From positions 124,001-188,000 of IMG/VR virus record IMGVR_UViG_3300045971_000344: DNA of 64,000 nucleotides, one strand, 5' to 3'. Below the pieces are notes generated by a model that worked only from the letters and a program-made list of their open reading frames with translations, was not told the origin of the DNA and did no database searches. Position numbers and translations under genes: made by a program. Below, piece by piece: positions 1 through 50,621 of the stretch (its first letter is position 1; every line of letters begins with the position of its first letter).

Positions 1-335
1 TTGTCGTACTCAGCTACGTACTGTTTTCTTTGATCCTCATCAGCCTTATCCCAATCTGACTTGTTAAACAGGGTCTGACTATTTTTCTTAGTAGTAGTAC
101 CAGAATCTGAAGGGGAAGTAGATGGCTTAGACGCAGGTGTATCTGGCTTTTTAGGCGCTTCTGCAGGTTTAGTCGCCTCAGGTTTTTTAGGGGCCTCCGC
201 GGTCTTAGCAGTGGGCTTAATATTTTTCTTATGTTTAGGTGATTGTCCACCAGTCTTTTTGGATTGTCGTTTATTCGACAATTCGGTATTAAGGACATTT
301 CCTTTTATCTTAACAGCAGATAGATTCAATTTCAT
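1..335 (-). CDS. Partial CDS (3' end outside window); Lys/Pro/Ala-rich N-terminus, leader-family protein
   Basis: My translation from ATG at 335: MKLNLSAVKIKGNVLNTELSNKRQSKK...EAPKKPEATKPAEAPKKPD...DWDKADEDQRKQYVAEYD, open to the window edge. It starts 3 nt after the stop of 339..1265 and replaces the 14..298 call. Confidence 0.75.
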   Translation of the reverse strand, partial: MKLNLSAVKIKGNVLNTELSNKRQSKKTGGQSPKHKKNIKPTAKTAEAPKKPEATKPAEAPKKPDTPASKPSTSPSDSGTTTKKNSQTLFNKSDWDKADEDQRKQYVAEYD

Positions 336-338
336 AGA

Positions 339-1265
339 CTAATCCTTTAGCGACTCATATTTTTCTTTTAGAAATTCTAACACTGTAGAAGCGTCTCGTA
401 ACTTATGTCGGCGCATATTAGCGATAAAGTCATCCACAATCATTTTTTCTGCCTTAGACCCAGAACGAGAATTGTGTATATTGTTCTCTATAGAGATTTG
501 AATATCTCTTCTATCAGATCCGTAGTATAATCTTGACCTCAAATCATCTGCGTCTTCTGAAAGAACATCTCCACAGTTTTTCTTAAAAAGCTCATTTATT
601 AGGTCCACGTATCCTCTAGATGAAGTAAATCCTTTTGTTGCCTTGTTTTTGTTCTGCACCATATAAGCGTTGTAATCCTTATAGAAATAAATAGGGATAC
701 CATAGGCGGTTCCATATTCACCTATCTTTCTATACATCTTAGCAAAGTCATAATACTTATCGAATTCTTTGCTTGTCAATTCTCTCTTTTTGTCAATACT
801 TATAACTGCGTACTCACAAAGGTTTATGTGGACCTCAGTTATATACTTATTTAGGGGCTTTATAGTTGGTTCTGTAGAGTAAATGCGATCCTCATTCTCT
901 TGATACCTAAGTGGTGCCTCATCATCTGAAGATCCATTTCGGAATTCTCTACCCCAGTAATCTACGGATTCACCTGAGTATTTCTCTGCGAGCTTATGTC
1001 CGTTAATTACCAAGCAACAAGCCCAATCCGGACTTGCCTGTCGTGCGTATCCTCCAAACTTAACCCTAGACATAGACAAAAAGTAAGGTTTAAACTTCTT
1101 GGACTTATTTGTTCTATCTGAAGATGTACCTAGGTTATTGGTCAAGTGTATGTTATTGTCTTCCATTATATTTACAAGTTTATCCACAGTAGTATTATGG
1201 TACACGATAGGAGATATACCTGCCAGTTCTGTATTAGTGTTAACATGTACTTTATTTATCTTCAT
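339..1265 (-). CDS. Putative ADP-ribosyltransferase-fold protein with N-terminal leader
   Basis: VYHNT...NIMEDNNIHL, YFLSMSR and ENEDRI follow the H...S...ExE order of ART active-site strands. Leader is MKINKVHVNTNTELA. Confidence 0.5.
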   Translation of the reverse strand: MKINKVHVNTNTELAGISPIVYHNTTVDKLVNIMEDNNIHLTNNLGTSSDRTNKSKKFKPYFLSMSRVKFGGYARQASPDWACCLVINGHKLAEKYSGESVDYWGREFRNGSSDDEAPLRYQENEDRIYSTEPTIKPLNKYITEVHINLCEYAVISIDKKRELTSKEFDKYYDFAKMYRKIGEYGTAYGIPIYFYKDYNAYMVQNKNKATKGFTSSRGYVDLINELFKKNCGDVLSEDADDLRSRLYYGSDRRDIQISIENNIHNSRSGSKAEKMIVDDFIANMRRHKLRDASTVLEFLKEKYESLKD

Positions 1266-1531
1266 AAGTTATCCCTAAATTCCCTATCATTTTTGACCCA
1301 CCTGTCTACTTCCTCTTTAGTTACATCTGCAGGTTTGTGTTTACTACATCTAAAACAGAGTAGTTTCTTCCCTGCCTTTGCTTCAGCTTTTTTAACTTCC
1401 TCGTAGTGGTAACACTCTAAAACAACTATATAGAGCGTACCTTTTGGTACTAATTTACTTACTACGTGTATTATTTTTCTTTTTGGAGTGACTGTAGGTT
1501 TCTCATCTACAGCGATAACTGTCTTTCTCAT
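1262..1531 (-). CDS. Small leader-family protein, possible Zn ribbon
   Basis: Likely start MRKTVIA at 1531 after AAGGTGA. Contains LECYH...CFRC. Confidence 0.6.
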   Translation of the reverse strand: MRKTVIAVDEKPTVTPKRKIIHVVSKLVPKGTLYIVVLECYHYEEVKKAEAKAGKKLLCFRCSKHKPADVTKEEVDRWVKNDREFRDNL

Positions 1532-1532
1532 C

Positions 1533-1637
1533 TTAATCACCTTTATTTTTGTATCGGTCCAAACCCCAAGCTATAACTGCACAAATTGCTAGGGCTACAA
1601 GGACCACCCCTATCATTCCATTTTCTGAGAGTGTCAT
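1533..1637 (-). CDS. 34-aa single-pass membrane peptide (not in ORF track)
   Basis: MTLSENGMIGVVLVALAICAVIAWGLDRYKNKGD, preceded by strong SD AGGGAG; fills the gap exactly. Confidence 0.65.
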   Translation of the reverse strand: MTLSENGMIGVVLVALAICAVIAWGLDRYKNKGD

Positions 1638-1666
1638 AGTTGTTCTCCCTTATATAAATTATTGGC

Positions 1667-2161
1667 TTAGTCTAGATGTAATGGAGAGATGTCCTTTGCA
1701 TTTTTAAGGTCCTCTTCAGTAAGGTGCTTACGTTTTAGTCCGATTAAGAACTTGCCTAAACTTTGTTTAACCGGAGGAAGTATACCCACTATTTGGTCAG
1801 GGCTAACAGTACCTTCTTTCATGAGCCATCGACCTAAGCCGTTAGAAGACTCATGGTGTTTGTCTTGAACGTACTGACTTTTATCGTCTTTGAACTTAAT
1901 TATGGACAATACTGTATAGTCCTTTTCTTGATTTATGGCCCAACACGCCTTCATTACCCACGCTACCGCGTCTACCAAGTCTTCAAAGGCATAGACATAC
2001 CCCTTTTTACTCAAACGCCCACCAAATTGATTCTTTGTAAAACCCAGGCTACTCTTATTAGGTATTAATCCTGTTTTAAGTATCTTCTTAGCGTTCTTCG
2101 TATCCGTTACATGGTACAATACGCTGTCTTCTGATGATATTGTTATACGTTTGATCTTCAT
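1667..2161 (-). CDS. ADP-ribosyltransferase-fold protein (Tpt1/KptA- or DarT-like N-terminal motif)
   Basis: LYHVT...AKKILKTGLIP followed by GYVYAF. SD AGGAGGAG. Leader MKIKRITISS. Confidence 0.6.
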   Translation of the reverse strand: MKIKRITISSEDSVLYHVTDTKNAKKILKTGLIPNKSSLGFTKNQFGGRLSKKGYVYAFEDLVDAVAWVMKACWAINQEKDYTVLSIIKFKDDKSQYVQDKHHESSNGLGRWLMKEGTVSPDQIVGILPPVKQSLGKFLIGLKRKHLTEEDLKNAKDISPLHLD

Positions 2162-2205
2162 GAGTTACTCTCCTCCTACTATTTTCTAAAAGTACAAGAT
2201 AATCT

Positions 2206-2841
2206 TTATACAAGCTTTTTGAAATACTGCGCTACAATAGACGCACCAACTCTTGACTTTGTATAAGTATCACTAAGTATTTTCATAAAAATAACCTCGT
2301 CTGGAGAGATCCCTTTCATGCTCTCGCCCCTTTTCTTTCTTCTTTGTTCCTCTATAACCCAAGCCTCTGGGTACTTTTTAGCCGTAAACTTTTCGGCCCT
2401 TATATGTACAGTCTCGTATTTACTTTTTTCGTCCCATCGTGCGGCTGACCCATGAACTATGAACTCTGCTAGAGAAGCAAAGTGTTCATTCGGGTCTTTT
2501 AGGTGCTCTTGTTTGCAAAGATCTAGAAATAGCTTCTTGTCACTTTCACTTACTTTAGTCTTGCCCTTACGATGCCATAAGTGGTGTGCAAGTTCATGTG
2601 TTAATACTTGAACCATTCGTGTACTGTTCTTTACATCAGCCCCTATACATATTGTGTCTTTAGGTTTAAGCCAGTACTCGGATCCCTGTATATTGGAGCA
2701 ACAAATTGAAATAGGTTCAACTATGTTGACCTTTAAGCCTAACTTTGGTTCCAACTTGTTTAAGGCTCTTATTTTAGTTTCTGTTGGACTATAGTAACCA
2801 TCTCTTCTAAATAGACTTTGTATAAAGTTTACCTTGCTCAT
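2206..2841 (-). CDS. Zincin-like metallopeptidase (HExxH)
   Basis: VLTHELAHH with downstream PNEHFA glutamate. Confidence 0.65.
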   Translation of the reverse strand: MSKVNFIQSLFRRDGYYSPTETKIRALNKLEPKLGLKVNIVEPISICCSNIQGSEYWLKPKDTICIGADVKNSTRMVQVLTHELAHHLWHRKGKTKVSESDKKLFLDLCKQEHLKDPNEHFASLAEFIVHGSAARWDEKSKYETVHIRAEKFTAKKYPEAWVIEEQRRKKRGESMKGISPDEVIFMKILSDTYTKSRVGASIVAQYFKKLV

Positions 2842-2856
2842 TATTTACTCCAATAC

Positions 2857-4089
2857 TCATCCGTTATTATTATTCTTAAAAATATTTACAATCTTGTCGC
2901 TTAAGGGTATCTTCTTAGATGAAAGCATATTAAATATACTTGTATCGCCCCAAGTTGCAATAGCTTCAAGCATTTTTTCAGTCAGGTCAACTTTTTTCTG
3001 AAGTAAGAATCTTACAGAATCGTTAATATCCCCGATTATGCAGTTGATAATAACATCTTCTTCTGGAACAATTCCGTTATCTAAAAACGTCCACAAAATA
3101 TCAGGCTTGTACTTACTAGCTTCTAAGCGTAATGCGTGGCAAACAGGGATGTTATTCCTTATCAAGATCGCGATTGAACCTGGATCATTTTTTATGGCCG
3201 CGGCCTTTACTGCCTCACTAGGGATAATTCCTCTTTTAATAATATATTCTATGTCCCAACCCTTTTTCTTAACCTCAGCAAGTTGGACGCTCTCACTTGG
3301 GTTAGAGTGTACTTTTAGTAAACTCGAAGGGCCTGTGTAGTCCTTATTTAAGCACTCTCCTATTACAGTAAATGCCTGTCGCGTCAAAAATACCGCCTGA
3401 AGTGGCTCCGCGTTATGAATAATTCCTCTCTTAGATTTATCTGCAAACCCAGAGTATCCACACTGTCGCAATAGCCAATTCCACTTAGTAGCTTTGGAAA
3501 GAGCGTTTCCATTAGTTAAATCCGAAGCTAGCATCCTACTAAGGTTCCAAAAGATTGATGAAGGATTTTGCTCATGTGCAGAGCTTCTAGCACCTTTCAA
3601 CTTTTCAGCATACGCTTCCTCAAGTAGATTATAAGCATTATCCTTTACTTCTTTTTTAGTTTTACCTGTATAATCTATCTCATGCTCCATTTGTTTCCAA
3701 CACTCATCCATAAAAATCTTTTTTAACTTCTTAAAGTCCTTATCAAACTTATTGGATCCATACTCGGTATATAGATCATTAACAAATGATTGCTTGTCTT
3801 TTACTCTAACTACCCAAATATGTGGCTGAGTAGCAGCAAAAGGTAAACGGGTTAACGTCTTATGTATATCTATTCCATACTCTTCCCAACAGGCCTGAAG
3901 AGGGTAAGTATAAATTCCTACCGGAGTATTATATATCGACTTTGGGTTAATACCAAGCTTGTCAATTGCAGTAAAGCTAATATAAACATCTGGATCGTCT
4001 TTCCACTTAGACAAATATTCATAGGCACTAATCTTTTTGTTTACTTTAAGATTTACGCGTGCCGAGATCTCTACATTAGTTATTTTCAT
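2857..4089 (-). CDS. Paralog family A member (divergent ART-like core) with C-terminal helical repeats
   Basis: VYISFT..DKLGINPKSIYNTPVGIYTYPL...CGYSGFADK...IH.AEPLQAVFLT is shared with 4929..5978 and 10905..12038. C-terminal PSExVxxA repeats. Confidence 0.6.
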   Translation of the reverse strand: MKITNVEISARVNLKVNKKISAYEYLSKWKDDPDVYISFTAIDKLGINPKSIYNTPVGIYTYPLQACWEEYGIDIHKTLTRLPFAATQPHIWVVRVKDKQSFVNDLYTEYGSNKFDKDFKKLKKIFMDECWKQMEHEIDYTGKTKKEVKDNAYNLLEEAYAEKLKGARSSAHEQNPSSIFWNLSRMLASDLTNGNALSKATKWNWLLRQCGYSGFADKSKRGIIHNAEPLQAVFLTRQAFTVIGECLNKDYTGPSSLLKVHSNPSESVQLAEVKKKGWDIEYIIKRGIIPSEAVKAAAIKNDPGSIAILIRNNIPVCHALRLEASKYKPDILWTFLDNGIVPEEDVIINCIIGDINDSVRFLLQKKVDLTEKMLEAIATWGDTSIFNMLSSKKIPLSDKIVNIFKNNNNG

Positions 4090-4092
4090 AGC

Positions 4093-4932
4093 CTACGTTC
4101 TCCAATAAGTTACTTTCAATCTTTTAGCATTTTTTGCCCACCAGTTATGTGCAAGAACGTTTACCGTAGGTATCCAATATTTTTTATAATATTTTGGAGC
4201 CAGTACTTTTAGATTTTCAAGTTTATGAATTTCGTTCCAAATATAGGTCTCTATTTCATCAGTACCACTACCCATTAAGGCGTTTACTCCGGATAAGTTT
4301 TCTCCATAAGCTTTAAGATTCTCTGGACTAGTCGAGAATACCCAAGATATACTTTGTGGAGAACATACTATATTTAAAGGAAACTGATGTAAATAAATCA
4401 TATCCTTTCCGTGCAGGTAACTAAAGCTACAAGGGTCATAGCCCTTTTTTATCTTATTTGGATGATTATGTAAAGTAGCTAATCTAGTAGAGCCATATTT
4501 TTCTATGGTCTTAGCGGAAGCTGGGTCTAGACTTACGGATTTATTAGTCCCACTTGTTGCGTATGCTATAATCTTCCCTGTTTCTAAATCAAAAAAGTAG
4601 ACATGCTCTCTGGATTTATTTCGGATTTCTTCTACCTTAGCTAACACTGACGCTAGTAACTTTGGACTTAATTTCGCAGGGGTTGTCTTTATAGGTTTTG
4701 GAAGACCTTCTTCTATAGCTTTTGGCATTGTAGCATCTAACAATTTAACCGGCTTAGCATAGACCTCTTCAATTACGGTTTCAAAGACTCCATTAAAGGG
4801 TCCATTATTAGCTTTTAGCCACCTTTTAAGTTCAGCAGTAGCTTTTGCTTTATTTAAGCCCTGTTTTTTCCATTCAATTAATAATGGACGAATATCGGCT
4901 TTTGTTACTCTAGCTAATACTATCTTTCTCAT
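4093..4932 (-). CDS. JAB/MPN-like metalloprotease-domain protein with leader
   Basis: REHVYFFD...TLHNHP...SFSYLHGKD fits E...HxH(P)...S..D. True start is MRKIVLAR at 4932, overlapping the upstream stop (ATGA). Confidence 0.55.
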   Translation of the reverse strand: MRKIVLARVTKADIRPLLIEWKKQGLNKAKATAELKRWLKANNGPFNGVFETVIEEVYAKPVKLLDATMPKAIEEGLPKPIKTTPAKLSPKLLASVLAKVEEIRNKSREHVYFFDLETGKIIAYATSGTNKSVSLDPASAKTIEKYGSTRLATLHNHPNKIKKGYDPCSFSYLHGKDMIYLHQFPLNIVCSPQSISWVFSTSPENLKAYGENLSGVNALMGSGTDEIETYIWNEIHKLENLKVLAPKYYKKYWIPTVNVLAHNWWAKNAKRLKVTYWRT

Positions 4933-5978
4933 AACGTGCCCTTTTCTTTTAGGTCTACCAAGATTTCTTTCCAAAGACTTCCTGTTAATCCTTTAGACAC
5001 TAGCTTTTTAGACAGTATACTCAATTGTGAAACAGTTAATTGAGATAAAAATTTCTGTTTATTACCCACGAATTTTATACCAAAAGGCTGAGCCGAGGTT
5101 ACACCTAAAATATAGTGTAAAAGCATTTTTAGTGATCTACCTTTTTCGTACCCATCAAGATCAAGACACTCGTCTTCAGTCTTAAGGAGTTCTATTAGGT
5201 CGACTGGTGATTTAACTAGCTTTGGTGGGTCTTGGTGATTCGCTACATTTTTTATTTTAGTAATAACTGTAAAAGCCTTGGCTGTTAGGAATATTGCCTG
5301 AATAGGTTCACCTTCATGAATAAACGCTTTTCCACTTTTATCTGCGAAGCCATCGTACCCACAAAATCTCAATAAAGTATTCCATTTTGTTATTTTCTTT
5401 ATACCGCTGTCTTCACCGGTTAAAGCTTCGGCTAGGCTCTCAACAAAACTCCAAAAAGCAAACGCAATGGATTTATACTCTTTACTATAACGCTCGATTA
5501 AGTAATCATAATCTTCGTCTACGCTATCAAAAACCTTCTTTTCGTTCTTAATAGCTCTTAAGCAACTCAGTTTCTTTTCTTTACCATTCTCCTTTAATTC
5601 AAGGTAAAAAGATTTGAGCTTTTGAGCATCGGCTTTGAAGTTGTCTAATTTATAACTGGTCTTCATATCGTGAATAAAATTAGCACCAGGCCTTACTTTT
5701 ATTACCCAGATGTACGGACGGTCACCAGCATACGGAATTGCGCTTATGGTCCACGATTCTAATTCATTGTCTTGAAAGATTTGTTTTAAAGGATAAGCGT
5801 AGATACCTAGTGGGGTCTCATAGTCTGCCCGTGGATTAATCCCAATTTTATCTTCATAAGTAAAGCTAATATAGACATTTGGATCATTTTTATACTTCTT
5901 AAGTTCTTCATAAGGGTTTACCTTAGGATTGAGCTTTGGATTAGACCTAGAAGAAACTTCTACCCAGTGTATTCGCAT
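4929..5978 (-). CDS. Paralog family A member (divergent ART-like core)
   Basis: VYISFT, GINP, GIYAYPL, CGYDGFADK and EPIQAIFLT motifs. Leader MRIHWVEVSS. Confidence 0.6.
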   Translation of the reverse strand: MRIHWVEVSSRSNPKLNPKVNPYEELKKYKNDPNVYISFTYEDKIGINPRADYETPLGIYAYPLKQIFQDNELESWTISAIPYAGDRPYIWVIKVRPGANFIHDMKTSYKLDNFKADAQKLKSFYLELKENGKEKKLSCLRAIKNEKKVFDSVDEDYDYLIERYSKEYKSIAFAFWSFVESLAEALTGEDSGIKKITKWNTLLRFCGYDGFADKSGKAFIHEGEPIQAIFLTAKAFTVITKIKNVANHQDPPKLVKSPVDLIELLKTEDECLDLDGYEKGRSLKMLLHYILGVTSAQPFGIKFVGNKQKFLSQLTVSQLSILSKKLVSKGLTGSLWKEILVDLKEKGTL

Positions 5979-5986
5979 ATACTCTC

Positions 5987-6793
5987 CTACTTAGTATATT
6001 TTAACAAATGAGTTAACGCTTTATTTGGATCTTTAAAAACCTTCCCATCTTCTGAAATAGAGTAATCAACTATGTTTTTAGGTGTAACAACCTGTGGCTT
6101 ATTTTTAATAAGTATTTCGTGTTCATTACCCCAGCGCATCCCGTTAGCCATAAAGCTATCAAAGTCCTTCTCGTCTAAGTAATGCCTAAACAGGTCTTCA
6201 ATGTTTAAAAGAACATCAGGACCTTTAAGTTTCTCTTTAAGTATTATCGCAGATTCATTACGGTTCCTAGGTTGCCACCCAGCAAACTTTCTTGCTATAT
6301 ACTGTTCAGGACTCCAACTAGCCAGTTTACAATCTCTAAGAGAAAGAGATCCTTTTTCTAATAAAGATTTAAGAACTTCGTCTTTTAAAACTATACCTCT
6401 ATAACAGGTTTTAGGCGGAGCAGATCTAAAGATAGCTGGAGGGTTTATATTCATAATAAGGTCCACTAACTCTGGGTTATCATTTTTACCAAAGTCAGAC
6501 CATAGAATTGCCGCGTGTAAACATTTAACCTCTTCTTTAGTTGGGTCTGGTAGGACCAAAAATCGCCAAAACTGAGCATCAGCACAATAATCGGCCAACT
6601 TTTGGACTTCTTTGTCTGTCTTTACTTTTTGCTTTGATGAAGACAGTCCTAGTCTGTGCCAAGTTCCTGCCTTTGGTCCACGTACATAAAATCCGGTATC
6701 TCCGTAGCCACACGCTGAAAAGAAAAAATTTATTTTAGTCGTGTCTACTGCTTGAGATTTCTTTTTGACCGCGGCAATAACAATCTTTCTCAT
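5987..6793 (-). CDS. R-S-E clade ADP-ribosyltransferase (VIP2/Alt/Mod-like motif order)
   Basis: CYRG...ASWS...IARKFA...NEHEILI. Leader MRKIVIAA. Confidence 0.7.
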   Translation of the reverse strand: MRKIVIAAVKKKSQAVDTTKINFFFSACGYGDTGFYVRGPKAGTWHRLGLSSSKQKVKTDKEVQKLADYCADAQFWRFLVLPDPTKEEVKCLHAAILWSDFGKNDNPELVDLIMNINPPAIFRSAPPKTCYRGIVLKDEVLKSLLEKGSLSLRDCKLASWSPEQYIARKFAGWQPRNRNESAIILKEKLKGPDVLLNIEDLFRHYLDEKDFDSFMANGMRWGNEHEILIKNKPQVVTPKNIVDYSISEDGKVFKDPNKALTHLLKYTK

Positions 6794-6799
6794 AGCTTA

Positions 6800-7462
6800 C
6801 TACTCCACATGAGGTAGATACCGCAACTGCTGGTAACGACCTTTATTTTGTTTTATGAAATTCTCTGCCTTGACCTTACTAATATTGCGCTTAGTAGTAT
6901 ACCAATCTCCACAGTCATAATACTGGACGTCAAAAGTAGATACTACCTTTATGTAAAACATAGCGCTATAGGACCTATGTGTCCGCCCGTCTTTTGTCTT
7001 CCACGTCCAGATTGGATAGGACCCATCATAAAATCCATCATGTCCTAAGAAAACAACCTTCTCATATTTTCGGTAATCAATACTCGACCTAACATAGACC
7101 TTATCCATTCTAGTTAGGTCCTTAGGATTTGTAGCAATATATTCCTTAGTAGGCTTATAAATCAAATTATGGTCAAACTCTATAAACTTTACATTAGGCT
7201 CATCATAGTAAAAATCTTCAGCATCGGTTCCTTCAAGATCTGTTGTTACTGCCTCGCCTTCACACGGACCAACGCCTACTCCTGTCTGTCCATCGCATTT
7301 TACTATATAGAAATTCAGGTCCTCAAGAGATTCTGCAAAGGTATACTCCGCCTTAAGTAATTTCTTTCTCAGGTCTTCTACGATATGCTTATCTACATCT
7401 TGATACCGTACGTGCTTACATACGATCTTTGACTTAGCTTTAGCTATAATGATCTTTCTCAT
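6800..7462 (-). CDS. Hypothetical leader-family protein
   Basis: 220-aa ORF starting MRKIIIAK; no domain recognised. Confidence 0.6.
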   Translation of the reverse strand: MRKIIIAKAKSKIVCKHVRYQDVDKHIVEDLRKKLLKAEYTFAESLEDLNFYIVKCDGQTGVGVGPCEGEAVTTDLEGTDAEDFYYDEPNVKFIEFDHNLIYKPTKEYIATNPKDLTRMDKVYVRSSIDYRKYEKVVFLGHDGFYDGSYPIWTWKTKDGRTHRSYSAMFYIKVVSTFDVQYYDCGDWYTTKRNISKVKAENFIKQNKGRYQQLRYLPHVE

Positions 7463-8055
7463 ATAATAACCCCTATAGCTTGCTTATACCAGTTTTTAAA
7501 TGTAGTATTCTCTAACAGGTCCAAACAACCCAGTGTAAGTAACTGTGGATAAAATTCATGCTTATGAGTTAGTGCATAATGCTCCTCAGAGGACATCTTT
7601 CCTAGTATAGGCGTAAACCACTGCTTAATTTGATAATGGCTAAGTTGTAAAAAATAATTATTAGAGTAAAAACACTTAAGCCATTCTTCATTCTGAGCGA
7701 GCGGTGAGTCTAACAAAGAATGTAGAAGCTTGTACTCTTTTGAGATCTCATTATCTATGTGGTCATTAAATTTACTATGCAAGAACTCATGCACTATAAC
7801 TAATGCAGGTGTCCAAGGTTTATCCTCAAAAACTTCTATGTTTATAATAATTTGACTTCCTGTCCACTCTCCTTGTGAAGCTCCTAGGTCTTTATACTTT
7901 TTTAGGCAAAAGTTCTTTGAAGAAATTATGTTCTTTATTACGGCCGAAAGTTTCGGATCTTTAATCAGGCCAGGTATTTTAGTAAAAGTTTCTTGTGCTA
8001 AATTAAGGTATTTTTCTCTAATTGCTTCAGGTAAATACCCTACTTTTATCTTCAT
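7459..8055 (-). CDS. Zincin-like metallopeptidase (HExxH)
   Basis: VIVHEFLH plus downstream HEFY; ATGA overlaps on both sides. Confidence 0.6.
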   Translation of the reverse strand: MKIKVGYLPEAIREKYLNLAQETFTKIPGLIKDPKLSAVIKNIISSKNFCLKKYKDLGASQGEWTGSQIIINIEVFEDKPWTPALVIVHEFLHSKFNDHIDNEISKEYKLLHSLLDSPLAQNEEWLKCFYSNNYFLQLSHYQIKQWFTPILGKMSSEEHYALTHKHEFYPQLLTLGCLDLLENTTFKNWYKQAIGVII

Positions 8056-10298
8056 AAGCCAAGTTCCTTTACATACTTAGAGAGGTCTTGCTTTGCCTTG
8101 AATTTAGTTCTTTCCTCTACGGCTGGTCCGTGTGATCCATTAATTCTCTCAACTAAATAAGCATGATGTAGTACGTATTGAATATTTGGATTAGTCAATC
8201 CAATTTCTTGTGTCTGAAATTGCTTAGTAAATGTCCAAGAGCAATCTTCATCTGTATCAGTTTCCCCAGATACCTTAGATAGTGCCTTTCCACTTATAAG
8301 AATATCACCATGAAAAATTATGCCAATATCAGCTTTACGTCCAAAAGATTCTCCTACGTACTGCAAACTCTTATCTATATTAGGAGCTATATAAAGAACA
8401 TCTCCCATAGAGCGACCTGTCTTTTTTGTGCCTCGAAGTTTGAATCCTGACAATAATATAGCCCCTGCGGCTGATACTGCGGTCCCATGAAAACCGTCTT
8501 TAATGACTTTAACTTCAGGGTTTTTTAAGTTATTTCGTAAATAGTTTTCTATTTTTTCAGATCGCTTTATTGTCCATAGTTTCTTTACCTTAAAAGATAC
8601 CCCATGAACGTTCGCCATGAAGGCTTCTAACTTCTGTTCCACTTCATGCGTGTCCTCAACAGCTTGTTCTACCTTTACTTGTTCTTCTCTCTTTATAGTA
8701 AAATACTTTTCAAAGATCTCATCTTCGTTACGCTTTCTGACATTCCACTTCTTAACAATACTTAAAGAGATCCTAGGAATCTCTTCATCAGGTAATGCCA
8801 TTTTAAGATGCTTTTCTTTTACTTCCCCAAAGGGAGAATCATAGGTTAATCTAAATTTTGTTGCCAGTAACGCAGACAATACCGTCTGTTTTACAATCAA
8901 AGAATCCTTTAGGCCACTAAAAGTATATTTAAATAAGTCGTCTATATCTAAGGTCTTAAGGAGCTTTATAACAAGAACATCGTCTAGTCGGACAAATTGG
9001 TCTTCGGTTAGGACTAATTTCTTTAAGTACGCTTGTAGTGATGACCCTGACATACTTGTTATAGCCGTAACTGGGTCGGACTGTTCAACAACCTCCGAAC
9101 TATCTTTATCTATTGCCTTATAGATACTTTTTATTCTAGTTATATCTGTAGTTGATAAATAAGGTATCATCCAAGACTTGGGAGAAAATAGCTTGAAATC
9201 AATTTGCTTTTTATACTGTAGCGCGCGCTCTATGGCTTGTTCAAAAGGATTTGACTTTATTCCATAACTTTTTGCATAGTCATCCGCATTTATTCTAAGG
9301 CTAGGTATTTTCTTAATTGACCTAGCGGAGGTTACAAACCAAGACATAGTCTTATCAAACATAAGGGCGCAGAATATCGCAAGGTCTTTATCTCCGCCCA
9401 CATCTGAAGAAAACTCTGAAAAATGTAAGATAGGGTACAAATAAAATTCGGCCTTTAGCGTGCTATCTAAATTGCTTTTTATCCTTTCATCATAAACTCT
9501 ACTTTGACCATATTTTTTCTTACTCTCGTTAAGCCTATTCTCATAATCCTTGGTTTCTAAAAAAGCCTTTCTTTTATCTAGTAAATATTTGTTCATAAAT
9601 TTTATTATTACATCTTTTACTAAAGTCTTATCTAATTTGTTTGCCTTAAGAGCGACCAAGTCTAAGTCTTTTAGACCCATTGTCTTGGACGAACCTACAT
9701 TTAACTTTACTCCCCTGACTTCTATGTCTTCTTTACTGTCCACATGAAATTTTCTAAAAATAGGAACAACAACCTTTGTCTTTAACTTAGCCTTTGGACC
9801 AAGCATTAAGTATGCAGTAACATCGTGCTTAACATCTTCGGGGGCTTTCAAGAAGGCTTTTGTAAGCTCAGGGAAAAACTTAATAAGGTATTCTGAAATG
9901 CTATAGATACAAAAAATTAAGAAATTAGTGTTCTCATTTATAACCTTAGGATTTACACCCAGGTCTTTTAGACTTTGCTTTACAAGCACGTGGTTATCTT
10001 TAAACGTGTTCTCTATTAAAGAAACTCCGTCACCCTTCTTAAAACTCTTTTTACCTATGATAGAAAGTAATCGCGACCCTGCAAACTTGGTTTCATTCTT
10101 TCGAACCATGGGATGCCCGTTTAGAATAGGCACAAATTTCTTTCCGTCAAGATCAATATATAAGCTCTTTAGATAGCTATGAACCAAAACAACAGGAATA
10201 GAGTGTCCAATCAATCTTTCATTTTTCCAATACTCAATACCTTTTATTTGGTCAAATTGATTGATCTTAGCAGCCAGTGTGTATTTTCTATTAAGCAT
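8052..10298 (-). CDS. Large protein with C-terminal PARP-like (H-Y-E) catalytic domain
   Basis: GFHGT...AILLSGFKL...GRSMGDVLYIAPNIDKSLQY...QEIGL resembles the PARP signature HG[ST]..I...G....G.M.G.G.Y.A....KS..Y...E. Confidence 0.7.
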   Translation of the reverse strand: MLNRKYTLAAKINQFDQIKGIEYWKNERLIGHSIPVVLVHSYLKSLYIDLDGKKFVPILNGHPMVRKNETKFAGSRLLSIIGKKSFKKGDGVSLIENTFKDNHVLVKQSLKDLGVNPKVINENTNFLIFCIYSISEYLIKFFPELTKAFLKAPEDVKHDVTAYLMLGPKAKLKTKVVVPIFRKFHVDSKEDIEVRGVKLNVGSSKTMGLKDLDLVALKANKLDKTLVKDVIIKFMNKYLLDKRKAFLETKDYENRLNESKKKYGQSRVYDERIKSNLDSTLKAEFYLYPILHFSEFSSDVGGDKDLAIFCALMFDKTMSWFVTSARSIKKIPSLRINADDYAKSYGIKSNPFEQAIERALQYKKQIDFKLFSPKSWMIPYLSTTDITRIKSIYKAIDKDSSEVVEQSDPVTAITSMSGSSLQAYLKKLVLTEDQFVRLDDVLVIKLLKTLDIDDLFKYTFSGLKDSLIVKQTVLSALLATKFRLTYDSPFGEVKEKHLKMALPDEEIPRISLSIVKKWNVRKRNEDEIFEKYFTIKREEQVKVEQAVEDTHEVEQKLEAFMANVHGVSFKVKKLWTIKRSEKIENYLRNNLKNPEVKVIKDGFHGTAVSAAGAILLSGFKLRGTKKTGRSMGDVLYIAPNIDKSLQYVGESFGRKADIGIIFHGDILISGKALSKVSGETDTDEDCSWTFTKQFQTQEIGLTNPNIQYVLHHAYLVERINGSHGPAVEERTKFKAKQDLSKYVKELGL

Positions 10299-10316
10299 AA
10301 ACCTTACTCCTTAACA

Positions 10317-10888
10317 CTATCTAAGTTCTTTTTTAGGATCCAATTTGTCTACAGCTATAACCTTTAGTATTTTTGGATCATAGACAATGCAGTGCATATC
10401 TCCCGAATAATCTTCAATAACTAAGGAATCATATCCTAAAGATAAAATAAGCTTTAACCATTCTTTTGCTTCAGTGTTCTTAAATAGATTTTCCCAGACG
10501 TAGCTAAATGCCCAAGCAAGTTCACCCGACCCCATAAGATTTTCTGTGTAAGAAACTCTGGTATGATTAATCGACTTTAGCCTACGGTCTAAATTTGGAA
10601 CTGCATCTAGTAGGAGATCTACAACTTTTTTGGAAACATCTCCAGAGATTTGTTTCTTAGAAGAAATCTTAACAGAGATAACTATCCCCACCTTATTGGA
10701 ATAGTGATTAACCGCATAGGACTTTGCACCATCTAAAGCATCAGTAAAATAAAGTCCAGGTCCATGTTCCATCCAATTTTTTCATCTAGAGAGTAACTAA
10801 TATCAAATTTATCTGAGGTAGTCATTCTACCCTGATACCATATTTTTGTTGCGGAGCTACTAATACTCGAAAGTACAACCTTTCTCAT
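10317..10888 (-). pseudogene. ART-like gene (polyvalent-protein type) split by a 1-nt frameshift in an A6 run
   Basis: ATG at 10888 after SD GAGG gives MRKVVLSS...IWYQGR...KFDISYSLDEK. One extra A at 10777-10782 joins it to NWMEHGPGLYFT...AKSYA...LGYDSLVI...IVYDP (track ORF 10317..10772). Confidence 0.7.
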
Positions 10889-10904
10889 ACTAACCTCGTC
10901 TAAT

Positions 10905-12038
10905 TTAATTGTATGCGCTTTTGCCTGTCTTTGCCCAACAAGCTAGTATAGCCCTATCCATTCGTTTCCACCATTGTCTATCTTTTAGATCTGATCCCGC
11001 GGATACTTGTTTTTGGGCACAGTGAGTGATAAGCATCTGTAAACAATTTTTATTAGCCGATTTCCAGAGCTCTGGAGGAGTATTCTTTACTACAAGACCA
11101 GGTATCTTACTAATAGGTATAGATTGATTCTCAGCCGAGACCAACCACTGCAACAGAGCTTTATCATACTCATATTCTTCGTTATCATAACGCTGGTCAA
11201 CTGTTCCAAGAGCTCTAACAAAGTCAATCATATCCGAGATAGGTAAACGCTTATCAGTATTTTTATACGTCTTATTATAGCATTCACCTATTACGGTGAA
11301 CGCATCTTTTGTTAAGAATACAGCCTGTATAGGTTCAGATGGATGGATTATACCCTTTCCTGTCTTATCTGCAAAACCCGTATAGCCACATTTACGGAGC
11401 AACCAGTTCCATTTAACCGCGCCATTCGTATGTATGCTCTCATCAAATAGTGTAAGCTCCCCCGCTAACAGTCTACTAAGATTCCAAAAACTACTACATG
11501 GATTTTTAATCCTAGCGGTAGTAATTGCCTCAAAAAATAGATATTTCCATTTTGCATTAACATTTTTAGTAAAGATAGTTTTCCAATCACGTATGGCTTT
11601 AGGTGAAGCGCCCCTAAATTTTTCAAGTTGTTTTGCTTTTTCTTTTACCCAATGACCCATGTATATTTGTTCAAGTATTACGGCATCCTTATCAAACTTA
11701 TCTGAACCATAGTCGGTGTGCATGTCTTCAATGAAGGTCTTACCGGTCTTTGCACGGACAACCCAGATATGAGGTGCGTTACCCGCAAAGGGTATTCCTT
11801 CTAAACTTTGATCTCGTCCTATGTTATATTCAAACCAAGCAGTTTTTAACGGATAAGTATAGATACCGATAGGGGTATTGTATTTTGATTGAGGATTTAT
11901 TCCTACTTTATCAATGTGGGTAAAACTAATATAGACATCCGGGTCATCTTTCCACTTCTTAAGGTAGTCATAAGCACTAACCTTTGGATTTAGCTTAGAG
12001 TTTGACCGCGTAGCCAAGACCACTTCTTTAACTTTCAT
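10905..12038 (-). CDS. Paralog family A member (divergent ART-like core)
   Basis: Same motifs as 2857..4089. Leader MKVKEVVLAT. Confidence 0.6.
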   Translation of the reverse strand: MKVKEVVLATRSNSKLNPKVSAYDYLKKWKDDPDVYISFTHIDKVGINPQSKYNTPIGIYTYPLKTAWFEYNIGRDQSLEGIPFAGNAPHIWVVRAKTGKTFIEDMHTDYGSDKFDKDAVILEQIYMGHWVKEKAKQLEKFRGASPKAIRDWKTIFTKNVNAKWKYLFFEAITTARIKNPCSSFWNLSRLLAGELTLFDESIHTNGAVKWNWLLRKCGYTGFADKTGKGIIHPSEPIQAVFLTKDAFTVIGECYNKTYKNTDKRLPISDMIDFVRALGTVDQRYDNEEYEYDKALLQWLVSAENQSIPISKIPGLVVKNTPPELWKSANKNCLQMLITHCAQKQVSAGSDLKDRQWWKRMDRAILACWAKTGKSAYN

Positions 12039-12040
12039 TT

Positions 12041-12466
12041 TTACTCTCCAAAAGTCTCTGCCCAGTCACCTTCAATATCAGAATCGTAGTAATCTATATC
12101 TGAAATATCAAATTTTGATAACCAAGCGTTACTTCGTAAGTATTCTGCTACCTTTGGGTTGTGATGCCATTTCCCTCTTTTAGTAACATCCGTTACAGAC
12201 AATACTAGTTCTCTGCTACCTGCAAAGTAAAGAACTAATCCTACTGCATCTTTTAACTTAAAATGTTCCCAGACGCGATAATGAAGAAGAGACTCAGGGA
12301 AAACATAGACTGTATTTTTGTCTACGACCATTGCTCTACAAACCCTAGATCTATCACAACATTCTTTAACCTCTTTTTTATCTGGGTTTACAAAAACGTC
12401 TTTATAGTCATTGCTAAATCTAGTAGACACTTGGTCAACGAACTTTGCCAGTACGACCTTTCTCAT
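12041..12466 (-). CDS. Hypothetical leader-family protein
   Basis: Starts MRKVVLAK; SD GAGG. Confidence 0.65.
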   Translation of the reverse strand: MRKVVLAKFVDQVSTRFSNDYKDVFVNPDKKEVKECCDRSRVCRAMVVDKNTVYVFPESLLHYRVWEHFKLKDAVGLVLYFAGSRELVLSVTDVTKRGKWHHNPKVAEYLRSNAWLSKFDISDIDYYDSDIEGDWAETFGE

Positions 12467-12475
12467 AAATAACCT

Positions 12476-12541
12476 CTAGCTTTTTGGCTTCTTAGGCTGC
12501 TTTGGTTTCTTTACTTCTTTACGAATATCTTTATTTCCCAT
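12476..12541 (-). CDS. 21-aa highly basic peptide (not in ORF track)
   Basis: MGNKDIRKEVKKPKQPKKPKS; SD AAGAGG upstream; fills the intergenic gap. Confidence 0.5.
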   Translation of the reverse strand: MGNKDIRKEVKKPKQPKKPKS

Positions 12542-12564
12542 GATGGTTTCCTCTTTTATTTATA

Positions 12565-12849
12565 TTAGGTTTGACTAAACCAGTCTTTAGTTATAAAAAG
12601 ATTTATCCTGCTCCTCATTCCTTTTTCAATATCTTTTTTATAGTTCTCATAAACCTCAGGATATTTTTCTTCGTAGCCACTTTGAGCATACATCTTTTCT
12701 ATTTCATTTGGATTCTTTATTGCTTTTGCTTTAAATAAATCAGTTATCTTAACATGGCGCCCTTGAGTTAGGGCCAAATATTTAGCACCTAAATCTACTT
12801 GGCTAGAAGTCAATCCAGATTTATCTTTTGCTATAACGACTTTTCTCAT
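12565..12849 (-). CDS. Hypothetical leader-family protein
   Basis: True start MRKVVIAK at 12849, ATGA overlap with the upstream stop. Confidence 0.6.
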   Translation of the reverse strand: MRKVVIAKDKSGLTSSQVDLGAKYLALTQGRHVKITDLFKAKAIKNPNEIEKMYAQSGYEEKYPEVYENYKKDIEKGMRSRINLFITKDWFSQT

Positions 12850-13217
12850 TTCCAAGCCTCTCTTGTATCAGGGTCACGGTTATTAAAGTTCTGACTGTTT
12901 ATATCAAACCACTCATCTTTAGTGATCTTATACCGTTCATGTATCTTTAGGTTTATAATCAGGTACCACCCGTATTCGTACGCCAATTTTTCCCTAGCGT
13001 TTCGACTCAAACTAGTGTTTTGTTTGTGCTCACAATAGGACATCCAATGTCCGAGCTCATGGGAAAGAATAATCATTTTCTTTCGCGTTGTCTGAACACT
13101 GTCTAAATAAATAGTCTTTGACTGATAATCACAGCGGCCTAGAACAGATAGCGGCTTTTGCTCTATTTGTATTCCGAGGCCGTGTGCTATATGGATTAAT
13201 TCCTCTAGTCCATTCAT
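12846..13217 (-). CDS. ImmA/IrrE-like HExxH metallopeptidase
   Basis: LGIQIE...GRC...IYLD...ILSHELGHW...REKLAYEYG. Likely start MNGLEE after AAAGGA. Confidence 0.7.
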   Translation of the reverse strand: MNGLEELIHIAHGLGIQIEQKPLSVLGRCDYQSKTIYLDSVQTTRKKMIILSHELGHWMSYCEHKQNTSLSRNAREKLAYEYGWYLIINLKIHERYKITKDEWFDINSQNFNNRDPDTREAWK

Positions 13218-13231
13218 GGTAAATCCTTTGG

Positions 13232-14236
13232 TCAACAATTAAGTTCAGCTTCTTTAAAGACCTTTTCAAGTTTGTTCGCAAAGTCAACATACTTCTTTCT
13301 ATACACTTTAGCACTAGGATTGGCCTTAGTGGTCTTAACGTCCTTTACATCTGGTGCTATTGCTTTCTGTAACTTGGTTATAAACGCCAAAGCTAAGTCA
13401 TAAAATTCTTTATACTCAGCATTACTCAGCTCTTTTTCTATTTTTGATCTTTGGGCATCAATTTTCTTTTGTGCTTTCTTAACAAATACATAGTAATAGT
13501 CGCGTATAAATTCCCCGTTATCAGCCGTTTCTTCTTCACCTAGATAGTTACGCTCGTCTATCTCAAATTTCAGATCATACTTATGGAGCGCGCAAACCAT
13601 ATCCTTTAGGTTATACCGTGCTACCTTTTGTATCTGTTCTTCAGATAGGGGCTCATCATGAGTATTCGCAGTAATAACGTCTGTCTTTTTACTAAAAGCT
13701 CCATCATTACCTGTAGCGGACTTTATTTGTTTTGGATCAAAGACATGAAAATTCAAGGCGTTCATATCAAATTTATTTTGGGTTATTATACCATCAAAAC
13801 CCAATGCCTTTAGTTCTTTATGGAAGGGCTCAATATAACCCCAATGCCCTTCTCTAATTCCGCTTAAAGTGTCTTCGTTATTGAACTTACCTAGTTTGGA
13901 CGATAATTTTTGGACGTGCTTTTCGATTCTAAAATCAAAAGGTTTTTGTATACTTAGATAGACTGGCAGTACGCTCCCGTTTGCCCGGTCAGCAAAGCCA
14001 TTGGCTAAGGAAGGCGTAGATGTAAAGGAAAACAATCCTCGGTTACGCGTGTCCCTAAACGTTCCGAAGTCCGCGGCTGTACCATGATACATAACAAGCG
14101 GGGACCCATGTTTGTCAACTGCTTTGGAGCGACCAAACCAAATCCAGAAGTTATCCACGCCTTTAGGGTCAGCGTTAATAGCGTTACCTTTGGAATTCAT
14201 GTTCGTCTTAAAACTCGCGATAACTACATGTCTCAT
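13232..14236 (-). CDS. ADP-ribosyltransferase-like protein of the polyvalent-protein type plus helical C-terminal domain
   Basis: FWIWFGRSKAVD..G.PLVMYHGT..F..F...LFSFTS...A..FA...PVYLSIQKPFD...GFDGII...VFDPKQIKSATGNDGAFS. Leader MRHVVIAS. Confidence 0.75.
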   Translation of the reverse strand: MRHVVIASFKTNMNSKGNAINADPKGVDNFWIWFGRSKAVDKHGSPLVMYHGTAADFGTFRDTRNRGLFSFTSTPSLANGFADRANGSVLPVYLSIQKPFDFRIEKHVQKLSSKLGKFNNEDTLSGIREGHWGYIEPFHKELKALGFDGIITQNKFDMNALNFHVFDPKQIKSATGNDGAFSKKTDVITANTHDEPLSEEQIQKVARYNLKDMVCALHKYDLKFEIDERNYLGEEETADNGEFIRDYYYVFVKKAQKKIDAQRSKIEKELSNAEYKEFYDLALAFITKLQKAIAPDVKDVKTTKANPSAKVYRKKYVDFANKLEKVFKEAELNC

Positions 14237-16656: not shown

Positions 16657-16676
16657 AAGTTGGGTCTCCGTTCTAG

Positions 16677-17342
16677 TTAAAACCAGGATGATGCTACGTC
16701 TTTATATCCTACCTTATATTTTTTAAAAAGCTTGTTCAGACATTCTGTTTGTTTTGGACTAAATCTAGTATTAGGATTAGCCTTTAACTTTATACCTATG
16801 TCTAGAACGAATTTACGCTCCCACTCATTGAATTTTTGATGATTATTTTTCCATAGATAACGACAACGTCCATAAAAGGTAGACTCATCCGAGTTATCAG
16901 AAGTAGGTTTATCATCTCTTTGTTGAGTAACAGCTTCTCTCTTAGGTTGGTCTTTAACCAAAACTGATTTACCACAATACTCTGCGGCAAACAACTCTTG
17001 GACTATACTAGGATTTAACTTAAGTTCTTTTATATGAAACCGCTTAGTTATTGCTTCTTCAAGTTGGTTTTTACTATGGTAGCTACTAGGTGCAAACATA
17101 AACATTTGGTTATAATGGAGCTGGAATTGTTTTAATCTCTCTGGTCTCCAGTCATAACCAGTTCCTTCTATAGAAGACAAGTGAGACCTGGCGTTACTAT
17201 CTTTTGGGTTAGGTACAAAAACAAAGTTAATAAATTCAGATCCGGCTAACCCTCTTATCTTAGGTTTATCCCCTAGATTTAGAATCGTAATTGTACCCAC
17301 AGGTGGAATAACCAATTCTAATATCTGTTCTACGTCTATCAT
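16677..17342 (-). CDS. Hypothetical protein
   Basis: 221-aa ORF with C-terminal helical motif FNEWERKFV...SPKQ..CL. Confidence 0.65.
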   Translation of the reverse strand: MIDVEQILELVIPPVGTITILNLGDKPKIRGLAGSEFINFVFVPNPKDSNARSHLSSIEGTGYDWRPERLKQFQLHYNQMFMFAPSSYHSKNQLEEAITKRFHIKELKLNPSIVQELFAAEYCGKSVLVKDQPKREAVTQQRDDKPTSDNSDESTFYGRCRYLWKNNHQKFNEWERKFVLDIGIKLKANPNTRFSPKQTECLNKLFKKYKVGYKDVASSWF

Positions 17343-17343
17343 A

Positions 17344-17649
17344 TCAAGACCTTTCTTGGGTAGTTATAAAGTATTGCGCTCCAAAGATTAACCAGTATAA
17401 ATCGAAGGAGTTGTATAGACCACAAACCATAACAGTTATCCAAATAGATGTACAGAAACGACATTCTAATAAGTGCAAAAGATTTGGAGGATACGAGTAT
17501 TCTTTAAATAAAAATGAAAGAGGGCTATACAAACTTGGAGTGACCCGTATTATTCTCTGCCTAAGTGGGTCCAGTATAGAGGACACGCAGATAATAAGGG
17601 TAAGTCCATAAACCATAAGTATTTGATTAAATAACTTTAGTGTTTCCAC
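17344..17649 (-). CDS. DUF1360-like membrane protein with CxxC
   Basis: TM helix, ILDPLR...LLECRFCTSIW, second TM helix. Confidence 0.55.
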   Translation of the reverse strand: METLKLFNQILMVYGLTLIICVSSILDPLRQRIIRVTPSLYSPLSFLFKEYSYPPNLLHLLECRFCTSIWITVMVCGLYNSFDLYWLIFGAQYFITTQERS

Positions 17650-17860
17650 AGCAAGACCTCTTTACGGATATAGGAGTAGTATTGAAAGAAGGTGTTCTAC
17701 TATTAGTGGATAGCAAAGAATTAACGGATTCTTTATAGTCAATTAATGCCATCGCCATTACGTTCTTTGCTCTACATTCCTCTATGAACTTACTATAATC
17801 ATAAGGATTTCTCATTGATCTAATAATAGCTATTTGGTCAGAGTCTAAAGTCTGTAGCAT
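17627..17860 (-). CDS. Small protein with C-terminal CCG motif
   Basis: Likely start MLQTLD at 17860, which avoids overlap with the upstream gene; ends KRSCCGNTKVI. Confidence 0.5.
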   Translation of the reverse strand: MLQTLDSDQIAIIRSMRNPYDYSKFIEECRAKNVMAMALIDYKESVNSLLSTNSRTPSFNTTPISVKRSCCGNTKVI

Positions 17861-17864
17861 ACTA

Positions 17865-18299: not shown

Positions 18300-18317
18300 G
18301 TGATTCTCCTTTTAGTA

Positions 18318-18626: not shown

Positions 18627-18638
18627 ATATACTACCTC

Positions 18639-19133: not shown

Positions 19134-19139
19134 CTAAAT

Positions 19140-48063: not shown

Positions 48064-48067
48064 GATC

Positions 48068-50569: not shown

Positions 50570-50621
50570 AGGAGTTTCTCCTTAATGTGTTGTGTATCAT
50601 ATATAAATTATGATTATTAAT

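Follow-up and report, generated by a model that had tools for sequence, protein, structure and literature searches.

A dense island of ADP-ribosyltransferase-fold genes sharing an N-terminal leader in an uncultured jumbo myovirus: possible effectors delivered from the capsid

The viral contig IMGVR_UViG_3300045971_000344, which derives from an uncultured jumbo myovirus, contains an unusual cluster of genes related to ADP-ribosyltransferases (ARTs). A 64,000-nucleotide stretch of this contig (hereafter the window, meaning the whole stretch at its full length) was analysed. At one end of the window, directly downstream of a gene that encodes an NAD+-dependent DNA ligase, 17 genes lie close together in one orientation and form an island. 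Nine of these encode proteins for which an ART fold is assigned, modelled or suspected, and they belong to six families. A short N-terminal leader is shared by most genes of the island, whether or not they are related to ARTs, and the three genes that lack it are exactly the three that encode HExxH peptidases. We lean towards the view that this is an island of capsid-targeted, injected effectors located at a position equivalent to the ligase-alt region of bacteriophage T4, and that it presents the domain set of polyvalent proteins as separate genes.

The island and its setting in the phage genome

The contig is 294,944 bp long. The same phage is present in two further assemblies, a JGI contig of 293,540 bp and a Logan contig, and the latter is 100% identical to the window across 20.3 kb. 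The closest cultured phages, judged by the tail sheath, are Pseudomonas phage PaBG (31% identity), phage NCTB and the Erwinia/Dickeya jumbo phages. A nucleotide-level search for near-identity between 17 kb of this sequence and cultured phages gave no match.

Genes for the tail sheath, tube, baseplate and fibres are found between 22 and 64 kb of the window, and the major capsid gene is located just past its right edge. From 1 to 17 kb, every gene is on the minus strand, and the order runs from the tail genes through the ligase to the island. The first gene of the island (13232-14236) begins on the stop codon of the ligase, with an ATGA overlap. After the last gene of the island, a 944-aa open reading frame (ORF) leaves the window.

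The 17 genes comprise nine with an ART fold, three for HExxH peptidases and five for small proteins of unknown function. The nine are an ART-PolyVal gene and a broken ART-PolyVal-like copy, a PARP-like gene, an R-S-ExE type gene, a DarT-like gene, a minimal H-type gene, and three ART-PolyVal-like genes without the NAD-binding histidine (His-less).

A leader shared by non-homologous genes

The strict form of the leader follows the pattern M-[RK]-[KHR]-[IVTL]-[IV]-[ILV]-[AS], with MRK[IV]V[IL]A as the typical form. It is found on eight of the 404 ORFs that start with ATG and reach 40 aa or more in the six frames of the window, and all eight are located within 1262-14236. It is absent from loci L002-L022. 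The preliminary description of this DNA, made from the sequence alone, stated that every ART candidate carries the leader. This is true of the strict form for only three of the nine candidates (5987, 10733/10317 and 13232), and the other five strict-leader ORFs encode small proteins of unknown function that are not ARTs; the remaining ART candidates start with looser relatives, for example MKVKEVVLAT, MKIKRITISS and MLNRKYTLAAK, the last of which is a shifted variant at the N-terminus of 8052-10298. With a loose pattern, written after the data had been seen, the leader is counted on 14 of the 17 island genes and on none of the 33 genes outside. Each of the three leaderless peptidase genes directly follows an ART-type gene (12846 follows 13232, 7459 follows 8052, and 2206 follows 2857). 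The leader marks the whole island except the peptidases, and not the ARTs as such.

The leader can be described as a short, basic-plus-beta-strand segment. In the AlphaFold2 (AF2) models of 339-1265 and of a His-less paralogue, the first 13-14 residues are disordered. An independent gene caller used the leader starts in four of the ORFs checked. At codons 4-7 of the leader the third positions vary freely, which shows selection to be acting on the peptide. A role as a signal peptide was considered and ruled out, since the hydrophobic run is only four residues long and is followed by charged residues. When the back-translated leader was compared with the contig collection, multiple matches occurred, among those listed, only in this contig; the single matches elsewhere are probably ordinary MRK-hydrophobic starts.

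Six families of ART-fold genes

The preliminary description counted up to nine ART-fold genes of several clades within 14 kb. All nine are present as ORFs on the minus strand and form a dense multi-clade set, but the evidence for the fold is uneven and ranges from firm to leads only. The assignment of 13232-14236 to the polyvalent-protein type and of 5987-6793 to the R-S-E type agrees with the evidence given below.

The product of 13232-14236 matches the Pfam family ART-PolyVal (PF18760) with 90.7 bits (E = 1.9e-25; cut-off 31.2 bits), and PF18760 is found in 31 of its 31 homologues. The histidine of the YHGT motif (H51) and the GFDGI and QIKSA motifs are all kept. On sequence grounds, it is firmly placed as an ART-PolyVal protein. 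Public gene calls differ in the start: one begins at Met13 and gives 322 aa (P0004), thereby omitting the leader, and the other gives 334 aa. The long form is favoured because of the ATGA overlap with the ligase stop codon.

The second gene assigned to the polyvalent-protein type, 10317-10888, is indeed ART-PolyVal-like, but it consists of an N piece (10733-10888) and a C piece (10317-10772) that overlap as ORFs; the frame changes by -1 between them, at a run of six A residues (A6, 10777-10782). The frame break is the same in three assemblies. The 10317-10772 part reaches 19.9 bits against ART-PolyVal, under the gathering cut-off of 31.2, and matches phrog_25279 at 2.5e-10. The histidine is replaced by glutamine (WYQGR where the family has YHGT), and QIKS has become ILKV. 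Either this copy is decaying, or the A6 run serves for slippage.

The large protein encoded by 8052-10298 matches the Pfam PARP catalytic domain (PF00644) over residues 548-654 (36.3 bits, cut-off 26.7), and this firmly supports a predicted PARP-type catalytic domain. It had been described as having an H-Y-E motif. Its FHGT and LYIAP segments line up with the H and Y of PARP3, whereas the alignments end before the catalytic glutamate, for which E698 (in TQEIG) is a candidate picked by eye.

More distant is the protein encoded by 5987-6793. A word-indexed protein search returned the query alone, and an exhaustive search gave nine distant homologues. In the alignment of the ten homologues R132 (of YRG), W160 of S-W-S, and E226 are invariant, and S159 and E224 are nearly so. 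The top matches of the family profile in the PDB are the Vis toxin (E = 0.1) and the mono-ART of SdeC (E = 0.49), which are non-significant and are aligned exactly at the R, S-W-S and E-x-E motifs. In the Atlas, the structural neighbours are clusters annotated as DRAT, ADPrib_exo_Tox, ART and Mod_ADP_RT, with PF03496 and PF01129 at template modelling (TM) scores of 0.42-0.51. There is no significant match to a Pfam or PHROG family or to a solved ART, the homologues also lack a Pfam ART match, and an hhalign comparison of the family with T4 Alt gave no similarity. The conserved, ordered motifs are good evidence for a putative R-S-ExE ART, albeit one without a formal family match.

The 339-1265 gene has relatives in nine viral contigs, among which H23, S64 and E123-x-E125-D-R127 are invariant. 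An AF2 model made from the family alignment has a predicted local distance difference test (pLDDT) score of 75.7. The top six matches of this model in the PDB are all DarT (E = 5e-3 to 1e-2, probability 0.96-1.0, target TM score 0.35-0.40), and the next match has an E value of 0.5. Its structural neighbours in the Atlas include DarT, DUF2971 and AbiGi clusters. In Pfam and PADLOC, there is no match to a sequence model of DarT (PF14487). The model provides good evidence for a DarT-like ART fold.

The label Tpt1/DarT-like had originally been given to 1667-2161. It should be moved, with 339-1265 being the DarT-like gene of the two. The 1667-2161 protein has a TM score of 0.62 to an Atlas phage cluster annotated as DarT/PARP, and it also has neighbours in Arr, DUF952 and Scabin-like clusters. 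The comparison with Tpt1 (8tfz) is non-significant (E = 1.3) and covers the YHxT motif only. There is no Pfam match, and no significant match to a family model or solved member of Tpt1/KptA. The same YHxT motif gives a weak profile match to the 339 family, and one homologue (P0003) was found in the word-indexed protein search.

The three divergent paralogues (2857, 4929 and 10905) are true paralogues, with E values of 1e-60 to 1e-85. Members of this family are found in eleven other viral contigs. Nine tandem copies stand at 8591-19403 of locus L005 (IMGVR_UViG_3300045988_167296), between radical-SAM genes; the N-domains of these copies are conserved and the C-termini vary. For the N-domain, an AF2 model (pLDDT 84) shows six strands in ART order and a 100-residue helical insert. 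Structural comparison by Foldseek against BFVD matches it to an ART-PolyVal-like protein of Yersinia phage fHe-Yen9-03 (E = 1.6e-4) and, more weakly, to several polyvalent-protein ARTs. Residues D224, E235 and Q238 are invariant and H232 is nearly so, close to the position of ART beta4-beta5; these invariant polar residues suggest an active site. The PF18760 model does not match the three paralogues, the C-terminal regions of ten family members contain no informative Pfam domain, and tblastn of two members against cultured phages found nothing. A moderately supported assignment, based on the model, is an ART-PolyVal-like scaffold of uncertain chemistry. The paralogy that had been proposed for these genes is confirmed and the proposed fold finds moderate support, but the NAD-binding histidine is missing. 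The structural check of the fold is likewise divided: the 339-1265 model matches DarT, and the paralogue model matches the BFVD protein but no solved ART, with a chain of the cyanophage A4 pre-ejectosome as its sole significant match in the PDB. At least four of the nine ART candidates, the three paralogues and 10317-10888, look non-canonical or dead.

For 339, 1667 and 5987, and likewise for the paralogues and the small ORFs with a leader, searches against Pfam, PHROGs and PADLOC gave no match. Matches from sequence or profile searches of the PDB were at chance level or below significance for 5987, 1667, A2, A4, A6, 4093 and the 944-aa ORF.

Relatives in other phages carry leaders of their own

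Homologues of the island genes in other phages have phage-specific leaders, and each of these leaders is common to non-homologous neighbours in the same phage. In a T4-like contig (L007), MK[FL]KEYLKE is found on ten ORFs. In L018, MIKIRKFIEE starts four ORFs, one of which encodes an InPase protein, and in L002, MLSYKEYL.E is common to DarT-like and paralogue-family genes. The only homologue of 1667, P0003, starts with MKSFKQFILEE. Two cultured phages are included in this group. The DarT-like protein of the KVP40-like Vibrio phage K566 begins with MKKFNEFANE. Alishewanella phage vB_AspM_Slickus01 (OQ508957, 141.6 kb) has nine tandem genes (L029 3552-10154), five of them DarT-like and all annotated as hypothetical, with the leader MKIDxLYESLLEE or, for the nine together, MKI[DE]xLYESLLEE. 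One 170-aa protein among the nine has a WYHGS motif and appears ART-PolyVal-like by eye.

The T4 capsid-targeting sequence (CTS) is both required and sufficient to bring proteins into the core of the prohead, and it is cleaved off after [LI]-x-E (PMC9026906). The leaders of the homologues are close to the T4 sequence, MKTYQEFIAE, and most of them have an [LI]-x-E cleavage site. Since the homologues carry tags like the T4 CTS, the window phage appears to be built on the same plan but to use another tag. If it has moved to a new type of tag, MRKVVIA, its docking partner would have changed as well.

Fusions connect the small proteins and the DarT-like family to other domains. The N-domain of 12041-12466 matches a leader-tagged protein, L018 3897-4805 (blastp 2.8e-4), which contains InPase (PF18823, 3.9e-42), a domain described from polyvalent proteins. 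A single ORF in L014 (9272-10873) joins a homologue of a head-neighbourhood protein, which is 141 aa long in the window phage, to the N-domain of 6800-7462 and a DarT-like domain. This ORF, like the gene for the 141-aa protein in the window phage, lies a short way upstream of genes for an ATPase, a virion protein and the major capsid protein. In L015 (9155-10852), a DarT-like domain follows a HELGH segment, recognised by eye, in one ORF.

Packaging, injection and alternative explanations

From these observations, we infer a pathway in which the leader would act like the T4 CTS and dock proteins into the assembling head, and the packaged proteins would enter the cell together with the DNA when it is infected. 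Those copies whose motifs are intact (13232, 8052, 5987 and 339) could then ADP-ribosylate host protein or nucleic acid with host NAD+, and this modification would serve host takeover or counter-defence. The leaderless peptidases might process the cargo or act as effectors in their own right. A broader proposal, which we put forward tentatively and with somewhat less than even confidence, is that large myoviruses far beyond the T-evens load effector arrays into the head by means of phage-specific, exchangeable tags, and that these arrays are dominated by ART folds, including the DarT-like and His-less families.

Several observations weigh against delivery from the capsid of an ART-based effector set. 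The window leaders lack the [LI]-x-E cleavage motif of T4-type tags, and no prohead protease was located within the 84 kb of the phage contig that was read. Scans for promoters and terminators, as well as for the T4 late-promoter motif TATAAATA, gave chance-level results. The K566 homologue is found among early-type genes (RNA ligase, rIIA/B), and the count of loose leaders depends on a pattern that was drawn up post hoc. As for the fold, the ART-PolyVal family is itself a computational assignment, and 1667-2161 is the weakest of the nine, a candidate suggested by Atlas leads only. In the paralogue family, the NAD-binding histidine position is occupied by Ser or Thr throughout, and an hhalign comparison with the ART-PolyVal alignment is weak, with a non-significant 6% for the whole domain; the value is 52% for the C-terminal half, and 15%, with a co-linear alignment, once the insert is removed.

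Some of these points would fit a different explanation, namely that the island encodes host-takeover enzymes that are not packaged but act in the cytoplasm after infection, like ModA and ModB of T4. The leader would then be a propeptide that keeps toxic enzymes inactive until the neighbouring HExxH peptidase removes it, a degron that shortens their life, or a feature of translation initiation. The placement of three leaderless peptidases directly after ART-type genes, the early-type surroundings of the K566 homologue, the lack of a T4-type cleavage motif, and the AGA-AAG-rich starts, which could favour initiation, are all consistent with this. However, the leader is conserved as amino acids while synonymous change is free, which speaks against a role at the nucleotide level only. 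In T4-like phages, the leaders of homologues come near the proven T4 CTS, the island is co-oriented with and directly after the tail genes and the ligase in the manner of T4 alt, and L014 encodes a fusion of a DarT-like domain with a head-module protein. Overall, we consider an unpackaged set of enzymes rather unlikely. Far less probable still is an island for defence or superinfection exclusion, or a series of toxin-antitoxin-like pairs with an ART toxin and a peptidase antidote, directed against competing phages. The three ART-peptidase gene pairs and the DarT, AbiGi and DUF2971 relatives among the structural neighbours of 339-1265 could be taken to indicate such a role, but no PADLOC model matched among ten island proteins, no DarG-type macrodomain partner was seen, and neither a shared leader nor the T4-type leaders of the homologues are features of toxin-antitoxin systems.

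Another possibility is compatible with capsid delivery and narrows it. Only about four to six of the nine may be working NAD+ enzymes, with the His-less paralogues being internal head or ejection proteins, non-enzymatic or differently enzymatic, on an ART-like scaffold, and 10317-10888 being a pseudogene. The Ser/Thr at the histidine site, the pre-ejectosome chain as the best PDB match, and the expansion of the family in L005, where nine copies stand in tandem and differ in their C-termini, are in line with this, as are the frameshift, the His to Gln replacement and the other changes at conserved positions in 10317-10888. On the other hand, the paralogues keep their polar residues near beta4-beta5, their model matches an ART-PolyVal-like protein in BFVD, and the A-run could permit programmed or transcriptional slippage. 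We regard this narrowing as plausible, though a little short of an even chance. Capsid delivery of the leader-tagged proteins remains our preferred reading, with or without it.

Features of the island and neighbouring genes

Table 1. Genes of the island and its flanks, in the order ligase to left edge of the window
Feature	Coordinates	Strand	Remarks
NAD+-dependent DNA ligase	14233..16656	-	Pfam DNA_ligase_aden 1.7e-35, OB, HHH, BRCT
ART-PolyVal protein, 334 aa	13232..14236	-	strict leader MRHVVIAS; H51 in YHGT, GFDGI, QIKSA intact
Zincin-type peptidase, HELGH, leaderless	12846..13238	-	phrog_87 metallo-protease 6.6e-7; weak Pfam DUF6782/M78; overlaps ART-PolyVal stop
94-aa ORF, function unknown	12565..12849	-	strict leader MRKVVIAK; no family match (Pfam, PHROGs)
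141-aa ORF	12041..12466	-	strict leader MRKVVLAK; N-domain matches L018 InPase protein
Paralogue C, 377 aa	10905..12038	-	~260-aa N-domain, modelled ART-PolyVal-like fold; S38 at His site
Broken ART-PolyVal-like gene	10317..10888	-	strict leader MRKVVLSS on N piece; WYQGR replaces YHGT
PARP-type C-terminal domain protein (predicted), 748 aa	8052..10298	-	H604, Y636, candidate E698; Pfam PARP 5.2e-9; phrog_18612
Putative zincin peptidase, HEFLH, leaderless	7459..8055	-	motif only, no family match; ATGA overlap with PARP-like gene
220-aa ORF	6800..7462	-	strict leader MRKIIIAK; N-domain fused to DarT-like domain in L014 9272-10873
R-S-ExE ART candidate, 268 aa	5987..6793	-	strict leader MRKIVIAA; R132, S159-W-S161, E224-H-E226
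Paralogue B, 349 aa	4929..5978	-	paralogue of 2857 and 10905
279-aa ORF	4093..4932	-	strict leader MRKIVLAR; independent gene call also 279 aa
Paralogue A, 410 aa	2857..4089	-	paralogue of 4929 and 10905
Zincin/M78-like peptidase, HELAH, leaderless	2206..2841	-	Pfam M78 0.0043; phrog_87 0.0018; directly downstream of paralogue A
Minimal ART-fold candidate, 164 aa	1667..2161	-	LYHVT with H17, YVYAF; loose leader MKIKRITISS
89-aa ORF	1262..1531	-	strict leader MRKTVIAV
DarT-like ART-fold protein (modelled), 308 aa	339..1265	-	H23, S64, E123-x-E125-D-R127; loose leader MKINKVHVN
Start of 944-aa ORF (L013 10931-13765)	1..335	-	last gene before strand switch; no family match

Within the island, the 4093-4932 protein shows, by eye, an HNHP...S motif that makes it a JAB/RadC-peptidase-like candidate; it has no Pfam, PHROG or PDB match. 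ORF 14-298 was rejected as a gene, being of low complexity and out of frame within the 944-aa ORF. No tRNAs or tandem repeats were found.

Upstream of the ligase by 2 kb, a 160-aa gene (18639-19121, minus strand) has a precomputed Pfam match to Acb1 (PF23474), an anti-CBASS cyclic-nucleotide phosphodiesterase. The N-terminus of 19793-20917 (minus strand), MKKYYAYALLDPRKPGPFYYG, resembles a GIY-YIG homing endonuclease by eye only. Three consecutive large proteins of 425, 833 and 621 aa (46786-52487, minus strand) all match phrog_12249, which is annotated as tail sheath; the canonical tail sheath is encoded separately, at 61466-63358. Past the right edge of the window, two small ORFs in the vicinity of the head genes (L023 1395-1601 and 1703-2101) have loose-leader-like starts, MKIKAVTIANRS and MKIIKFVIVADAR. 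They have orthologues in L014 and could be core or scaffold-associated proteins.

Implications

That jumbo phages may encode many ARTs is already known (PMC9503650), as is the principle of the T4 CTS. What is new here is the density, six families of ART fold being represented by nine genes within 14 kb, together with the divergent tag. Two uncharacterised and widely distributed families, the DarT-like and the His-less ART-PolyVal-like, are also new, and so is the finding that in distantly related large myoviruses, cultured ones included, such arrays bear tags specific to each phage.

If the tag is a packaging signal, the island is a list of about 14 proteins delivered at the first moment of infection, and at least four of these, from different clades, would be NAD+-using enzymes that appear intact from their motifs. 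The principle of Alt and the CTS in T4 would then extend to distant jumbo phages and would be connected with the set of domains known from polyvalent proteins. An N-terminal tag that several proteins of one phage have in common would provide a simple sequence rule for recognising injected effectors in metagenomes. Should the tag not be a packaging signal, what remains is a collection of ARTs that is dense but, for a jumbo phage, otherwise to be expected. The idea can be tested in cultured phages: Slickus01 has a tandem array of nine genes with a tag, and a tagged homologue exists in KVP40-like phages of Vibrio.

Comparison with known systems

The closest parallel is the alt locus of T4, and the analogy with Alt that was drawn in the preliminary description is borne out by the ligase-adjacent position and by the CTS-like shared tag. 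In T4, gene 30 (ligase), alt.1 and alt follow one another on one strand beside baseplate genes, and the gene for the packaged ART, Alt, lies directly downstream of the DNA ligase gene, as the island does. In both cases, an N-terminal tag of about ten residues is found on otherwise unrelated proteins (PMC9026906; PMC3012670); the internal proteins of T-even phages are diverse anti-defence proteins that share only the CTS (PMC3012670). The two systems differ in several respects. The island tag, MRK[IV]V[IL]A, is without [LI]-x-E, and for the island packaging is a prediction. It has 14 tagged genes in one place, compared with a few scattered ones in T4. None of its ARTs is detectably related to Alt, and its ligase is NAD+-dependent, unlike the ATP-dependent ligase of T4.

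Polyvalent proteins, in which a metallopeptidase (MPTase) and an ART are hub partners, are thought to be injected with DNA (Iyer et al. 2017, PMC5512222). The island resembles them in combining ART-PolyVal with zincin MPTase partners, in having InPase in a tagged relative, and in the predicted delivery with DNA; L015 even has what by eye is an HExxH segment joined to a DarT-like domain within a single ORF. In contrast to polyvalent proteins, the domains of the island are encoded by separate genes with their own starts and not as one giant polypeptide, and no helicase, methylase, ParB or virion RNA polymerase (vRNAP) modules were seen in it.

The relationship of 339-1265 to DarT is one of fold, as indicated by the top six PDB matches. 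It differs from DarT and DarTG in having no Pfam or PADLOC DarT match and no DarG partner, in an extra helical C-terminal half, and in being phage-encoded and leader-tagged. With respect to gene content, the nearest counterpart is Bacillus phage G. More than 40% of jumbo phages encode ARTs, with a count of at least ten in phage G (PMC9503650), of several clades and in one large myovirus. The phage described here differs from phage G in that nine ART-fold genes are crowded into 14 kb and begin with a leader that neighbouring genes have too, and in that it is distant from cultured phages.

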